From Zygophlyctis sp. KS116 (Eukaryota; Fungi; Chytridiomycota), in contig BAAFSQ010000476.1 of NCBI GenBank assembly GCA_054661495.1, positions 1 through 5,581 of the forward strand: a stretch of 5,581 nt of DNA. The letters run 5' to 3'. Both the position numbers and the translations under genes were made by a program. How positions within the stretch are numbered: position 1 is the first letter of the stretch; every line of letters starts with the position of its first letter. Positions 1-5,581 of the stretch are shown here, piece after piece. The notes beneath the pieces are model-generated. The model was not told the DNA's origin, did not search any database, and saw only the letters and a program-made list of their open reading frames with translations.

Positions 1-128
1 TAGTTAATTTTGGGACTAAGATCCAAGGTTTTTACTGAACTGAGTGTTGTCCAAGTAGATAGTGCTTGGAAAGTTGATTAGTTGAAGGAATTAGTTAAGA
101 AAAGTTTATTAGAAAGTGGAATTTAACA
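1..128 (+). repeat. 3' part of an LTR of a second family (element B), cut by the window start
   Basis: 2-128 aligns to 5355-5480 with one substitution (G76/A) and one 1-nt indel (G84). Both copies end at ...GAATTTAACA and then diverge. This copy is not followed by the TGGTAGC PBS, so it is probably a 3' or solo LTR. Confidence 0.85.
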
Positions 129-133
129 TAAAT

Positions 134-437
134 TGTCGCCGTTCTCGATGGTTCGGGTCTCGATCAGGGGGCTGGTTCAGGCTCTGGGTATGGTGAATGT
201 GCTGGTTTAAGCCAAGGCTACCTTTTCCCTTCATAAATCGACAAGGGTTTTTAATGGGCCTATCAGGTGGCGTATTTTCTTTTACCCCAGTGGTTTATCT
301 TCAATCTAGAATAAATCTCAAGTGGAAATTAGTCTAATTATCTATTTGAGTGAATTTATTATCTTTCTTGAAATCTATAAATCAAATCTATTAGTCTTAG
401 TGTTAAATCTAGGTTTATCTGTGTCTTACGGTCGACA
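134..437 (+). repeat. 5' LTR of element A
   Basis: Starts TGTCGCCGT and ends ACGGTCGACA (5-bp perfect terminal inverted repeat, 9 bp with one bulge). 303/304 identical to 4856-5159 (T410 vs C5132). Confidence 0.98.
310..315 (+). promoter_or_regulatory. Candidate polyadenylation signal AATAAA in the LTR (functional copy would be 5032-5037)
   Basis: AATAAA lies 21 nt downstream of the inferred transcript start at 289, consistent with a short R region. Confidence 0.5.
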
Positions 438-451
438 AAGTATAAACCACT
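438..451 (+). promoter_or_regulatory. Self-priming (tRNA-independent) primer-binding site of element A
   Basis: No TGG follows the LTR. ATAAACCACT (442-451) is the exact reverse complement of AGTGGTTTAT (289-298), extendable by AAG(438-440)/CTT(299-301) across a bulged T441. Confidence 0.8.
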
Positions 452-483
452 CTATAAATCTTTTCAAAGTAAACTCTTGAAAA

Positions 484-1560
484 ATGAATAACTTGGAAAA
501 TTATGGTAATGCAGGCTCTCCTGCATCCCCCTTTGCTGGATCTCGCTTGGATGATGCTGGTGATGGTGGATCTCGGCCTGCTACCCCTATGAATCAGGAC
601 TGGACTAGTCTCTTGGCTAATCTCAATCAGAGATTAATGTTTAATCTTAATGTGGCTCTGCCGGAGCGATACAATGGAAGTATTGGCCGATGCAGGGACT
701 TCTTGCTCTCTGTGCAAAATCTGTTTGCACTTCAACCTCAAAAATACTCTTTGGACGAAGTTAAAACTCGTTTTATTGGAACTCTACTCTCTCATGAAGC
801 TTTGGCCTGGTTCCGGGATATAGTGAAGAGACGATCAGAGCTCCTTACAAATTATGATCAATTTATTATGGAATTTAAAGCCTTCTTCGACGATCCAAAT
901 GCACAGCGGCATGCCGCAGATGCATTAGGACGATTGAAGCAAGGCAAAGGATCTTGTCTGGCCTTTGCTACTAAATTCAGAAGGCTGGCTTATGAGACAG
1001 GATTCAACAATGGTGCACTGGTGAACTTCTTCAGAAAGGGATTGAATGAGGATATAAAGGATCGCTTGGCCAACGCTCTCGAGGAACCCAACGATCTAGA
1101 GGAATTCATCGCCTTGTGTGTTAAGATCGACCAACGGCTCTTTGATCGCCGGGTCGAGAAAGCCGGTACTGTTAAGTATAACTTTACATCTCCTAGATTC
1201 AATCCCCGACCGCCGTCGGGACCTGTGCCGATGGAGTTGGACTCTGTTCAACCGGAAAAATTTCAGAAACTCACTCCTGAAGAAAAGAAACGGCGTTTCG
1301 AACTCAAGTTGTGCCTCTACTGTGGAAATAAGGATCACAAATTGGCTACTTGTCCCGCTAGGAATGCTAAAATGAACAAGCCAGGACTGAATATGCCTGG
1401 AGTGTCGGCATTGGGAACAATGGAACAATCTCAATCAACTCATACCTCAGAATGGATGACTTGGATGTGCCAGTCAAGGCTATGGTGGACAGTGGAGCAA
1501 CAGGGAACTTCGTATCTCAAGCCTTTGTGGACACTATGTGTCTCCCAGCTACCTGTCTGA
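484..1560 (+). CDS. gag: Gag (capsid plus CCHC nucleocapsid); meaningful frame probably ends near 1416
   Basis: Capsid-like motifs PERYNG...CRDFL, ALAWF, LKQGKGS...FRRLA, FRKGLNEDIKD; GPVPMELD; zinc knuckle CLYCGNKDHKLATC (C-X2-C-X4-H-X4-C, 1312-1353). Resembles sushi/PEG10-like Gag. Residues after ~1416 look like an out-of-frame reading of the protease. Confidence 0.93.
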   Translation: MNNLENYGNAGSPASPFAGSRLDDAGDGGSRPATPMNQDWTSLLANLNQRLMFNLNVALPERYNGSIGRCRDFLLSVQNLFALQPQKYSLDEVKTRFIGTLLSHEALAWFRDIVKRRSELLTNYDQFIMEFKAFFDDPNAQRHAADALGRLKQGKGSCLAFATKFRRLAYETGFNNGALVNFFRKGLNEDIKDRLANALEEPNDLEEFIALCVKIDQRLFDRRVEKAGTVKYNFTSPRFNPRPPSGPVPMELDSVQPEKFQKLTPEEKKRRFELKLCLYCGNKDHKLATCPARNAKMNKPGLNMPGVSALGTMEQSQSTHTSEWMTWMCQSRLWWTVEQQGTSYLKPLWTLCVSQLPV

Positions 1561-3920
1561 TGCATGAATTACCTGTTCGTTTAGCAAATGGTTTAACTGT
1601 ACCTTGTACAGAATCTCTCAGTGAGACGATTGTTGGCATAATTGGTGATAATGATGCAAGACTAGTTGAGTTAGACTTAATTGTTGTACCTGATCTAAAG
1701 TTTGATGTGGTTCTGGGTCTACCTTGGTTAGTGCAGGCTAATCCTACTATTAATTGGAGGTTGAGAGAACTTACCTTCCCCAAGGATACAGGTGATCATT
1801 TAGACAAGGAACGTGGTTCCAATTTATCTCTACAAAATCTAAATCTTAGTGTTAATGATCGTACCTTAGTTCAAGATCCAGTGAAAACTGCTATGGATAC
1901 AGGTGAAATTTTATCCAAGGAACGTGGTTCCAATGGTTATCCACTACAACTAAACGTTAGTGATAAACAAAGGGATACCTTAGAGTCTCCAAAAAGAAAC
2001 TCTGACGACTCTAATTTATCAGTTGATGTCAGCTTACCTGACTGCTTAAAAGAATTTGCATCCGTATGTGAAGAAAAAGAGACCGATGAATTACCGCCAG
2101 AAAGAAATTACGACCTGGAAATTAATCTAAAGGATAGTAAGCTTACTCCCCCGTTCCTGAAGATATACCCTCTATCGAAGTTTGAAGAAGACCACCTAAA
2201 GGATTGGGTAGAGCAAGGATTAAAGAAAGGATTCATTCGACCCAGCAACAGTCCTTTTGCCGCACCGATCTTCTTTGTCAAGAAAAAGAATGGAAAGCTT
2301 CGTCCTTGTATTGACTACCGTCAGTTAAATTCAAATACCATAAAGGATGGTCATCCTCTTCCCCTTATCTCGGATGTTCTTGCTAAGTTTAAAGATTCTA
2401 AAGTATTTAGTAGTATTGACTTACGTGGTGCCTATAACTTGGTTCGTATGAAGACTGGTCATGAATACAAAGCGTCCTTTCGATGCAAGTTTGGGCAGTT
2501 CGAGCCGACAGTAGTCCAATTTGGTCTAACTCATGCTCCAGCAGTCTTTAGTAGATTCGTTTTATCTATTTTCAGGGATTTGGTAGATATTTACCTGGAA
2601 GTATACATAGATGACATTATTGTCTATTCTAACAGCTTGAAAGAACACAATCTTCATCTGAGGGAGGTATTTAAAAGAATCAGAGACAATCAGTTAGTTG
2701 TTAGCTTGGAAAAGTGTTCGTTCTTCTCTACTGAATTAGTTTATCTTGGATATAAAATTACAACGACAGGTATATCAATGGAACAAGAAAAGGTCCGCGC
2801 GATATTGGAATTTGGTAGCCCCAGAAATGTTAGAGAAGTCAGAAGCTTTTTGGGCCTCACTAACTATTACAGGAAATTTCTGAAGAATTTTTCACTCCTT
2901 GCCCTTCCTCTTACATCTTTAACGAAGAAAGGAATCGAGTTCAAATGGTCTGAAGTGGAAGAAGAATCTTTAAATAGATTGAAACACGCGGTACGGGATG
3001 ATGTTATGCTCAAATACCCCGACTCTTCTAAGGCTTTCTACATATATGCGGACGCGTCTGACTTTGCTCTAGGTTCGGTACTAAGTCAATTGGATGACGA
3101 ACAAAATTTGCGACCTGTGGAGTTCTATTCGAGAAAATTTCTACCGGCAGAACAAAACTATACAGTGTACGATAAAGAATTGCTTGCTATAGTGGAGTCT
3201 TTTAAGGTTTGGAGGCATTTCTTGTTATACTCTCCCCACAGGATAGAAGTCAAATCTGATCACAATAATCTGAAATATTTTGCAACTGCTAGATTGTATA
3301 AGCCAAGACATGCTCGATGGGCAGAAGAACTGTCCCAATATGACTTCGTCATATCGCATGTCTCTGGTGTGAATAACTCAGTAGCTGATGCTCTCAGCAG
3401 AGCTCCAAATCTTAGTTCTTCCAGCTCCCCCCACAGTGAAATGGCTATTTTGAAAGAAGATCAATTTGTAGGAGTAGCGGCTCTTGAGATGGACGACACA
3501 GATGAAGAATTAGATGATCAGTCAGATCATGACTGGCCAGAAGATGTGGCTCAATATTTAGTTTCAGAGGAATGGAATTGTCAGGTTCACCGAAAGTCTA
3601 AATTTCAACGATTCATTCCGAAATTTACTATCTATGGGGGTAAGTTATACTACATGGATGACAATGGATGGCCAAGATTGTATGCTCCGAAGAATCAGCG
3701 CTTGTTTGCCTTGAGTAGATTTCATGATGACTTGGGTCATCTAGGTGCTGATTCGATTGAAAAGCTTGTCATTCGAAGATATTACTGGCCTGGGTTGCTA
3801 AATGATTTGAAGAAATATGTGAAAAGTTGCAGTCAGTGCCAATTAGCCAGATCAAGAGGAGGAGCTCCTAAACCCTCCATGAAACCGATTCCTCCTGTGG
3901 CGTACCCTTTGAGCGGCTAG
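1371..3920 (+). CDS. pol: Pol part 1: aspartic protease, reverse transcriptase, RNase H, integrase HHCC domain
   Basis: Frame is open from 1371 (after TAA 1368-1370), first ATG at 1452. Protease AMVDSGA (DSG 1488-1496); RT KGFIRPSNSPFAAPIFFVKKK...CIDYRQLN and YIDD (2604-2615); RNase H ADASD (D 3051), KELLA, SDH, ADALSR; IN H-X4-H-X29-C-X2-C (3723-3839). Confidence 0.97.
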   Translation, partial: NEQARTEYAWSVGIGNNGTISINSYLRMDDLDVPVKAMVDSGATGNFVSQAFVDTMCLPATCLMHELPVRLANGLTVPCTESLSETIVGIIGDNDARLVELDLIVVPDLKFDVVLGLPWLVQANPTINWRLRELTFPKDTGDHLDKERGSNLSLQNLNLSVNDRTLVQDPVKTAMDTGEILSKERGSNGYPLQLNVSDKQRDTLESPKRNSDDSNLSVDVSLPDCLKEFASVCEEKETDELPPERNYDLEINLKDSKLTPPFLKIYPLSKFEEDHLKDWVEQGLKKGFIRPSNSPFAAPIFFVKKKNGKLRPCIDYRQLNSNTIKDGHPLPLISDVLAKFKDSKVFSSIDLRGAYNLVRMKTGHEYKASFRCKFGQFEPTVVQFGLTHAPAVFSRFVLSIFRDLVDIYLEVYIDDIIVYSNSLKEHNLHLREVFKRIRDNQLVVSLEKCSFFSTELVYLGYKITTTGISMEQEKVRAILEFGSPRNVREVRSFLGLTNYYRKFLKNFSLLALPLTSLTKKGIEFKWSEVEEESLNRLKHAVRDDVMLKYPDSSKAFYIYADASDFALGSVLSQLDDEQNLRPVEFYSRKFLPAEQNYTVYDKELLAIVESFKVWRHFLLYSPHRIEVKSDHNNLKYFATARLYKPRHARWAEELSQYDFVISHVSGVNNSVADALSRAPNLSSSSSPHSEMAILKEDQFVGVAALEMDDTDEELDDQSDHDWPEDVAQYLVSEEWNCQVHRKSKFQRFIPKFTIYGGKLYYMDDNGWPRLYAPKNQRLFALSRFHDDLGHLGADSIEKLVIRRYYWPGLLNDLKKYVKSCSQCQLARSRGGAPKPSMKPIPPVAYPLSG
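1784..2005 (+). repeat. Diverged in-frame tandem duplication (~111-bp unit) in the PR-RT spacer
   Basis: GGATACAGGTGA at 1784 and 1895; CAAGGAACGTGGTTCCAAT at 1805-1823 and 1916-1934; constant 111-nt offset. The end coordinate is approximate. Confidence 0.85.
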
Positions 3921-4309
3921 GAATTGATTTTTTGTCGAATCTACCTCTTACAAAGAATGGCAATAGACATTGTATTACCTGTGTGGATTACTCTACTCGG
4001 TGGGTGTGGGCAGTAGCAGTTCCAAGAATGGATGAAAAGACAGTTATATGGTTCCTATATCATTATATAATCACTTTTGTTGGTGCTCCGTTTGAATTAT
4101 TTTCTGATAGAGGTTCGAATTTTATGTCGGCAGGGGTCACTAGCTTTTTGAATCAGCATCAGATTAAACATCTGAAGACCTCTCCGTACCATCCTGTCAC
4201 CAATGGAATGATTGAAAGAGTTCATGGCATGATAAATCATGGGATTAGTGCGTTATGTCAAACCAAAGTTAATCGTTGGGATGAATTTGTAGATCAAGTA
4301 GTTTTTGCG
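3905..4309 (+). pseudogene. pol: Pol part 2: integrase DDE catalytic core, frameshifted on both sides
   Basis: Reads PFERLGIDF from 3905 in the frame of ORF 3932-4393. D 3926, D 4106 and E 4214 give exact D-X35-E spacing; TSPYHPVTNGMIER motif present. Confidence 0.93.
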
Positions 4310-4958
4310 AAATCACTCTGTGACGAAGTATGCACCTTACTATTTGCTTTTTGGGGTACATCCAAGACTTCCAGGGGATCTAGAACCACCTGATCAGATT
4401 CGGGTTCCTCTGGAAGAAGCTGAACGACGAATTGAAATTGAAGGTTTTACTAATAGAGAGCTAGAGGAACTTGGTGTTGCTCGGGGAAGTGCCTTTATCC
4501 GGACTCAAGCTGAAAGGGAACTCATGAAAGGTATAAATACTAATAAGGAGGACTTTTATTTCAAGTTGGATGATTGGGTTAAACTTAAGAATTATCAGAA
4601 GTCTAAGTTTCAGTTCAGTTGGAAAGGACCTTTTATAATTCATGGATTTGGTTACTATCCGACTTACTGGCTTAGAGATCCGAATGGAAATATACAGAAG
4701 AGTTTGGTGAATCAAATTAATTTGGCTCCATGGACTGCCAGATTAGAAGAAAATGAATCTTACTTCCTAGAACCTTCTGATCAGGATCTGGACCCCTTGG
4801 AAGGGGAGTACAGGGATGATGACGACGATAGAACATTCCCGGAAGGAGGGGATGATGTCGCCGTTCTCGATGGTTCGGGTCTCGATCAGGGGGCTGGTTC
4901 AGGCTCTGGGTATGGTGAATGTGCTGGTTTAAGCCAAGGCTACCTTTTCCCTTCATAA
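4308..4958 (+). pseudogene. pol: Pol part 3: integrase C-terminal region with GPY/F module and acidic/Gly-Ser tail, no chromodomain
   Basis: HSVTKYAPYYLLFG matches the post-core integrase motif; KFQFSWKGPF (GPF 4626-4634); stop TAA 4956-4958 lies inside the 3' LTR. Confidence 0.9.
4841..4852 (+). promoter_or_regulatory. Polypurine tract (plus-strand primer)
   Basis: GGAAGGAGGGGA, 12 purines, separated from the 3' LTR by TGA. Confidence 0.92.
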
Positions 4959-5159
4959 ATCGACAAGGGTTTTTAATGGGCCTATCAGGTGGCGTATTTT
5001 CTTTTACCCCAGTGGTTTATCTTCAATCTAGAATAAATCTCAAGTGGAAATTAGTCTAATTATCTATTTGAGTGAATTTATTATCTTTCTTGAAATCTAT
5101 AAATCAAATCTATTAGTCTTAGTGTTAAATCCAGGTTTATCTGTGTCTTACGGTCGACA
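4856..5159 (+). repeat. 3' LTR of element A
   Basis: Direct repeat of 134-437 with one mismatch; preceded by the PPT. Confidence 0.98.
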
Positions 5160-5163
5160 CATC

Positions 5164-5480
5164 TGTTATGATCTATAATGAATCTGAAGGGCTGGATGAA
5201 AGGCTAGGTTGAAGCTTCTAGGTGTGCACTTTAAGAGTAAGGTGATTTACTGATCTAATGCTTTGCGCTTTTACTGATCAAGCTTAAAATATTTAGTGAT
5301 GACAAATGTGGCTTGGCTCTTAGTTAATTTTGGGACTAAGATCCAAGGTAATAGAGTTAATTTTGGGACTAAGATCCAAGGTTTTTACTGAACTGAGTGT
5401 TGTCCAAGTAGATAGTGCTTGGAAAGTTAATTAGTTAAGGAATTAGTTAAGAAAAGTTTATTAGAAAGTGGAATTTAACA
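5164..5480 (+). repeat. 5' LTR of element B (317 bp)
   Basis: TGTTA...TAACA terminal inverted repeat; 3' part matches 1-128; followed by a PBS-like TGGTAGC and an ORF. The left boundary rests on the TGTTA terminus only. Confidence 0.8.
5322..5382 (+). repeat. Perfect 28-bp direct repeat with a 5-bp spacer inside the B LTR
   Basis: AGTTAATTTTGGGACTAAGATCCAAGGT at 5322-5349 and 5355-5382, spacer AATAG. Confidence 0.95.
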
Positions 5481-5481
5481 T

Positions 5482-5492
5482 TGGTAGCTTGG
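5482..5492 (+). promoter_or_regulatory. tRNA primer-binding site of element B, probably initiator tRNA-Met
   Basis: TGGTAGCTTGG starts 1 nt after the LTR end. TGGTAGC is complementary to GCUACCA, the 3' end of fungal and animal tRNAi-Met (the Ty1/Ty3 PBS begins TGGTAGCG). Confidence 0.7.
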
Positions 5493-5501
5493 ATAAACAA
5501 A

Positions 5502-5581
5502 ATGGAATTTAATACAGCTGCAGATATTACTACTGAACAGAAATTTCAACAGGCTTTAGAAATAATCAGTACTCTTCAGGG
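5502..5581 (+). CDS. Probable N-terminus of element B Gag (partial, runs off the window)
   Basis: ATG in A-rich context (CAAAATGG) 21 nt after the LTR; open frame MEFNTAADITTEQKFQQALEIISTLQG. Assigned by position only. Confidence 0.55.
   Translation, partial: MEFNTAADITTEQKFQQALEIISTLQ

Follow-up and report, generated by a model that had tools for sequence, protein, structure and literature searches.

The DNA analysed here (the window) is the whole of contig BAAFSQ010000476.1 (C476; 5581 bp) from the chytrid Zygophlyctis sp. KS116, whose assembly comprises 12.7 Mb in 1175 contigs. It holds parts of two retrotransposon families with long terminal repeats (LTRs), here called A and B, with one copy of A standing between two B LTRs. 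Element A is a Ty3/gypsy (Metaviridae) retrotransposon, as is seen in the TG...CA ends of its LTRs and in the order of its coding regions, gag first and then protease, reverse transcriptase, RNase H, and integrase. The window is probably the interior of a pile of Ty3/gypsy elements that grew by repeated integration just upstream of a transfer RNA (tRNA) gene, with recombination between two A copies as the likeliest source of the flanks of A, which do not match.

Read from the sequence, the layout is the end of a B LTR (at position 128), the five bases TAAAT, element A (134-5159), the four bases CATC, and a full B LTR (5164-5480). The features that define this arrangement are:

1-128, + strand: B1, the last 128 bp of a B-family LTR, ending TTTAACA (98% identity to 5354-5480; terminus matched by pattern search)
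129-133, no strand: spacer TAAAT, from the end of B1 to the start of A; one 4-bp duplication plus 1 bp
134-437, + strand: 5' LTR of A, 304 bp, TGTCG to CGACA
4856-5159, + strand: 3' LTR of A, 304 bp
5160-5163, no strand: spacer CATC, from the end of A to the start of B2; its length is exactly one 4-bp duplication
5164-5480, + strand: B2, a complete B-family LTR, 317 bp, the 5' LTR of a B element (last base 5480 by pattern search)
5482-5581, + strand: primer-binding site TGGTAGCTTGG of B2 and start of its gag (ATG at 5502), where the contig ends (homologous to the 5' end of the related C883 element)

At the left junction, the B terminus TAACA (124-128) is followed by TAAAT (129-133) and then by the A terminus TGTCG (134-138). 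At the right junction, the A terminus CGACA (5155-5159) is followed by CATC (5160-5163) and then by the B terminus TGTTA (5164-5168). B1, A, and B2 are all co-oriented on the + strand, and all four junction termini are intact. The four boundaries were set independently, as the flanks of other copies diverge at the same bases (for B in C634 and C339, for A in C437 and C576). A preliminary description of this DNA had given the layout, the spacers, and the intact co-oriented termini, and its coordinates prove to be exact. It had also set aside a nested insertion and a tandem with a shared LTR; both are indeed excluded by four complete termini with 4-5 bp of non-LTR sequence between them.

The contig start falls inside the left-hand B LTR, which truncates B1. 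What is left of B1 matches the right-hand B LTR at 98%, the differences being one substitution and one 1-bp indel. Because the right-hand LTR is followed directly by T and TGGTAGCTTGG (5482-5492) and then by an ATG at 5502, it is the 5' LTR of a B element. The contig stops 101 bp into the interior of that element.

LTR ends beside tRNA genes

How B elements come to rest is best seen elsewhere in the assembly. In all, 62 tRNA genes were located there; this number is a lower bound, and the repeat counts given below are likewise lower bounds. Only two other B 3' ends abut sequence that does not belong to an element. One lies 8 bp upstream of tRNA-Ile(AAT) in C339, and the second lies 7 bp upstream of tRNA-Ser(GCT) in C1162. 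Both have the orientation of the tRNA, and for random positions the chance of such a placement is about 1e-4 each.

The only other B 5' terminus is in C634. Here, the flank ends in CAAA, while the right flank in C339 reads CAAA, then TCCA, then the tRNA. Joined, the two flanks give an ordinary empty site upstream of tRNA-Ile, with a TATA-like element at the usual distance. Since C634 and C339 reconstruct an empty site in this way, it follows that the site B entered was a native one and that 4 bp were duplicated.

The same neighbourhood is used by other families. An LTR terminus (ending ACA) lies 4-11 bp upstream in approximately 16 of the 62 tRNA genes, and these termini represent, by their terminal sequence, about ten families. 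Among them are two elements whose integrase tails are 38-40% identical to that of A; the 3' LTR of one ends 4 bp from tRNA-Trp, and that of the other 8 bp from tRNA-Leu. Some insertions are found farther out, within the final 5-10 bp of an LTR that was there before (C576, C309). Where the orientation of a tRNA-adjacent element can be read, five run the same way as the tRNA and two are antiparallel to it. In the antiparallel cases (L062 in C349 and L091 in C167), it is the start of the 5' LTR that adjoins the gene. The L091 element carries a run of T after its LTR, where a tRNA-type primer-binding site is expected.

The breaks in the assembly tell of the same habit. Of the tRNA genes that lie within 120 bp of a contig end, thirteen have that end on their upstream side and one on its downstream side (binomial p 0.002). 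This excess is the signature of repeats that abut tRNA genes. The tRNA genes themselves occur in tight clusters in the assembly.

Most of the unoccupied tRNA genes (loci L049-L106) share a TATA-like box followed by AGTGCAAATTTTC, which ends 6-11 nt before the mature 5' end. The insertions fall between this AGTGCAAATTTTC element and the gene, and should therefore separate the tRNA gene from its upstream promoter element.

Target duplications are also regular. In three of the three other insertions that were checked, a 4-bp duplication was found: AACA for a solo LTR at tRNA-Lys, CAAA for B, and TCCT for an LTR nested in C576. Because these insertions have normal duplications, the missing duplication around A is not a property of the system. 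A-family LTRs elsewhere lie 2-6 bp from the termini of foreign LTRs, in C576, in C517, and possibly in C437.

From these observations, a way to build piles may be proposed. [quoted passage not shown] The integrase would presumably read the initiation complex of RNA polymerase III (Pol III), by analogy with Ty3 and Tj1. Each newcomer would land between the preceding element and the tRNA. As newcomers would target the same few bases before the tRNA, head-to-tail neighbours would come to lie approximately one duplication apart. The spacer CATC fits this spacing exactly; TAAAT is one base longer. The order of arrival would have been B1, then A, then B2, with the tRNA gene past B2, outside the contig. 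Two A copies within such piles, standing for instance at adjacent tRNA genes, would then have undergone homologous recombination, with loss of the DNA between them.

Several observations weigh against this account. In the window, ARAGORN finds no tRNA gene. The tRNA at the end of the pile beyond B2 is predicted, not seen, because the interior and the 3' end of B2 are not found in the assembly: the last 102 bases of the contig match nothing else there, and the interior of a related element finds no B interior. No LTR of the A family proper stands beside a tRNA gene in the assembly, only LTRs of families whose integrase tail resembles that of A. By serial insertion, A should be followed on its right by AAAT or TAAAT; CATC is observed, and an extra event is needed. 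For that event, the assembly holds neither a recombination partner nor a reciprocal A copy. Last, the order B-A-B is one molecule only as assembled, in an assembly that is fragmented and whose contigs break at repeats.

The unmatched flanks of A

The preliminary description had called the flanks of A mismatched, and they are. Whether 4 or 5 bp are compared, the left flank (AAAT or TAAAT) is unequal to the right (CATC or CATCT). This mismatch is not decay, because the two LTRs of A differ at a single base (410 versus 5132) and are thus 99.7% identical. The two ends of A come from different target sites, which is incompatible with one simple insertion.

A second event is thus required, as had been recognized before, and recombination between copies is the most economical one. 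In order of preference, the candidate explanations for the unmatched flanks are recombination between two A copies, a path error in the assembly, and an aberrant insertion that made no duplication. The first is consistent with the fact that A is present in the assembly as a single copy, without alternative flanks. No B terminus followed by CATC is found in the assembly.

An assembly path error is unlikely, and it is nevertheless the strongest of the competitors. Here, each junction would be real and would come from a different locus, the path having been threaded through near-identical A copies or LTRs, so that B, A, and B would not share one molecule. An assembly that lies in 1175 contigs and breaks at repeats of course invites such a suspicion. 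Many of its contigs break off ahead of a tRNA gene, at a distance of about 77 bp plus a spacer, as they would in short-read k-mer graphs, and the present contig itself begins at a 29-bp unit that is repeated within the B LTR. Contigs shorter than about 1 kb that hold junctions seem to be absent, and alternative flanks could have been filtered out with them. The assembly does not, however, contain a second copy of A or an A terminus with any other flank. Two collapsed copies would normally stop an assembler at the LTR edges, rather than let it run into both flanks, and a single-copy element with two LTRs allows one consistent path only.

A different class of explanation places the attraction in the resident elements. 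On it, tRNA targeting would not by itself account for the piles: resident LTR ends, the last ~15 nt of which might mimic the conserved tRNA-upstream motif and draw in the Pol III initiation factor, may seed further integration, or else elements may join a pile by a route that leaves no duplication. Were this true, seeding or duplication-free entry would explain the unmatched flanks of A without recombination, although it must be regarded as improbable. Slightly less probable still is a stricter version, in which integrases recognize resident LTR ends, or a motif within them, and integrate a few bases from these, Pol III genes playing no part.

Junctions of 2-11 bp between LTRs do recur, in the window, in C576, and in C517, just as integration directed by LTR ends would have it. 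The same LTR ends, however, also adjoin tRNA genes that lack any LTR neighbour, and at tRNA-Ile it was a native site that B entered. Further, the 5' LTRs of B2 and of C883 end in the same terminus, and intact primer-binding sites follow both, without insertions.

The imitation of a tRNA-upstream motif could be measured. B-type LTRs end in ~14 nt that bear a loose resemblance to the native tRNA-upstream motif AGTGCAAATTTTC, in the same register. A weight matrix was made from 39 unoccupied tRNA upstream regions, where the consensus AGTGCAAATTTTC ends mostly 6-11 nt before the tRNA. By this matrix the resemblance is not significant, with an empirical p of 0.13 for B and of 0.11-0.9 for most families. 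LTR ends at occupied sites score no better than background, the exception being one B-related family (p 0.01). Imitation of the native upstream motif by LTR 3' ends is thus unsupported as a general feature. That the B-type ending AGTGGAATTT sits in the native register is a weak lead.

Pol III-gene targeting, rather than an attraction to LTR ends, is therefore the most likely cause of the pile. The preliminary description had offered position-specific integration in two forms, either beside existing LTR ends or at a fixed distance from a landmark. The second form, with a Pol III gene as the landmark a short distance away, is borne out by B and about ten other families that lie 4-11 bp upstream of tRNA genes. 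The first is not needed, as the same ends are found at tRNA genes where there is no other LTR and as B entered the empty site at tRNA-Ile.

Least probable of all is that A entered aberrantly at the upstream region of one tRNA gene, by a non-concerted joining of its two ends or by end joining of its complementary DNA, with a few bases of the target lost instead of duplicated. The native region upstream of tRNA-Cys (C281) reads TAAAT, TTT, CATC directly before the gene, and a loss of 3 bp from it would give both spacers. Among 59 upstream regions, however, about 0.17 such coincidences are expected by chance; the three other insertions that were checked all have normal 4-bp duplications, and the assembly holds no B end followed by CATC and tRNA-Cys. 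As the original target of A, the TAAAT-TTT-CATC region is a weak lead.

Inside the two elements

Between its LTRs, A has the parts that are expected of a gypsy element. Internal sequence follows the 5' LTR, and a purine tract precedes the 3' LTR:

442-451, + strand: primer-binding region ATAAACCACT, complementary to 289-298 inside the LTR
481-1560, + strand: gag, with a capsid domain and a CCHC zinc knuckle (Pfam Retrotrans_gag and Ty3_capsid; open reading frame list)
1371-3920, + strand: pol, in the -1 frame relative to gag, with protease, reverse transcriptase, RNase H, and the integrase zinc domain (Pfam)
3872-4393, + strand: catalytic core of the integrase, in a frame that differs from those of both neighbouring parts (Pfam rve; frame map)
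4302-4958, + strand: C-terminal tail of the integrase (Pfam, frame map; 38-40% protein identity to the tails of the elements at tRNA-Trp and tRNA-Leu)
4841-4852, + strand: polypurine tract GGAAGGAGGGGA

The priming of A looks like the self-priming of Tf1, with a transcript that would start near 289. The 10-mer ATAAACCACT at 442-451 can pair with an LTR site 140 nt before the LTR end. This pair of 10-mers is kept in the A-family copies L004 and L008, whose LTRs are only 78-94% identical. The 10-mers of the primer region are invariant between A-family copies, and thus give no covariation evidence.

The pol of A finds its best match among solved structures in the Ty3 Gag-Pol structure 7Q5B (E 8.6e-91). 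Within the integrase, the frame changes near 3890-3900 and again near 4300-4320, and the two shifts cancel. As read, this copy of A is defective and could not make its own integrase, despite LTRs whose 99.7% identity makes them look young. Either it was mobilised in trans, or it was damaged after it had inserted. No chromodomain is recognized at the C-terminus of the integrase, where no Pfam family matches the 217-aa piece at E up to 0.01.

Two further features of A may be recorded. The pol frame crosses the polypurine tract and stops approximately 33 codons (100 nt) into the 3' LTR (4856-4958). In the linker between protease and reverse transcriptase, a segment of 72 bp is duplicated (1784-1855 and 1895-1966; 111 bp apart, 78% identity). 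A tRNA-like target within the start of the A LTR was considered, and was rejected on the ARAGORN and Rfam results; a search of the window against Rfam at E up to 10 gave four chance-level matches only, none of them tRNA-like.

The LTR of B carries a unit of 29 bp twice (5321-5349 and 5354-5382), 33 bp apart, and the left end of the contig begins exactly at this unit. In a related LTR at tRNA-Asp (L095, in C309), about 34 bp are duplicated in tandem in a similar way. Such duplications in the U3 (unique 3') part may be variable enhancer-like repeats. The primer-binding site TGGTAGCTTGG is common to B and two related families (that of C883, which is L119, and that of L062). Among 60 tRNAs recovered, none matches TGGTAGCTTGG beyond 7 nt at its 3' end; the tRNA that primes B either lies outside the recovered set or is non-standard. 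Fragments like A and like B are both held by C133, which is a degraded mosaic and is uninformative.

Significance and known counterparts

The preliminary description had seen in this locus a candidate for an undescribed system. That view does not hold, as the behaviour is the same as that of Ty3, Tj1, and the Ty3-like elements of Yarrowia (PMC4600332, PMC5911963). The targeting habit is already known; what may be new is the host group, and what is peculiar to the window is only that the flanks of A do not match. No report of tRNA-targeted LTR elements in chytrids was found in the literature that was searched. An early-branching fungus is thereby added to the hosts in which Ty3/gypsy elements home to the DNA before tRNA genes, so far budding and fission yeasts, Yarrowia, Candida, and Dictyostelium.

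In this genome the habit is common to about ten families, and roughly one in four of the tRNA genes detected is occupied. These facts bear on whether Pol III targeting is ancient or has evolved repeatedly. Targeting also explains why the assembly breaks upstream of tRNA genes. Further, because the same families occur in the same order and orientation at many sites, piles are ready substrates for ectopic recombination. The unmatched flanks of A may be the outcome of one such event.

Targeting upstream of tRNA genes of this kind is shown by Ty3, by Tj1, and by the Ty3-like elements of Yarrowia and Candida (PMC4600332, PMC5911963). Ty3 of Saccharomyces cerevisiae is like A in its domain order, and supplies the best solved-structure match to its pol. 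It integrates in either orientation, upstream of tRNA genes and no more than a few bp away from where Pol III starts. The LTR ends described here lie 4-11 bp from the mature tRNA 5' end, where a contact of the integrase with TFIIIB would be expected by analogy. Ty3 duplicates 5 bp of its target, relies on a +1 frameshift, and is primed by a tRNA; here, in contrast, 4 bp are duplicated, pol overlaps gag in the -1 frame, and A has the signature of self-priming.

[quoted passage not shown] It does so only in the orientation of the tRNA and with a 5-bp duplication, whereas at least two tRNA-adjacent elements are reversed here. Tyl3, Ylt1, and Tyl6 of Yarrowia lipolytica, Beta/Tca8 of Candida albicans, and DGLT-A of Dictyostelium are also Ty3/gypsy elements that are found upstream of tRNA genes, at distances from a few bp to about 30 bp (PMC5911963, Table 1). 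These belong to other hosts and lineages, and DGLT-A lies farther away, at 13-33 bp.

Recombinant LTR elements that lack matching duplications are known for Ty and for plant LTR elements. Like A, these are intact elements whose flanks come from different target sites; here, the event would have to be reconstructed from the flanks, its partner being absent from the assembly. Recombination between elements, in turn, is described as a source of LTR elements without matching duplications (PMC5911963, section 14). That review (PMC5911963) does not describe piles whose spacers have the length of one duplication.

A last likeness is with Tf1 and the sushi elements, which are primed from their own LTR or transcript 5' end rather than by a tRNA; in A, the 10-mer that follows the LTR can pair with a site in its own LTR. 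Tf1, however, targets the promoters of RNA polymerase II and has a single open reading frame, whereas A has gag and pol in different frames and stands within a pile of the tRNA-targeted kind.

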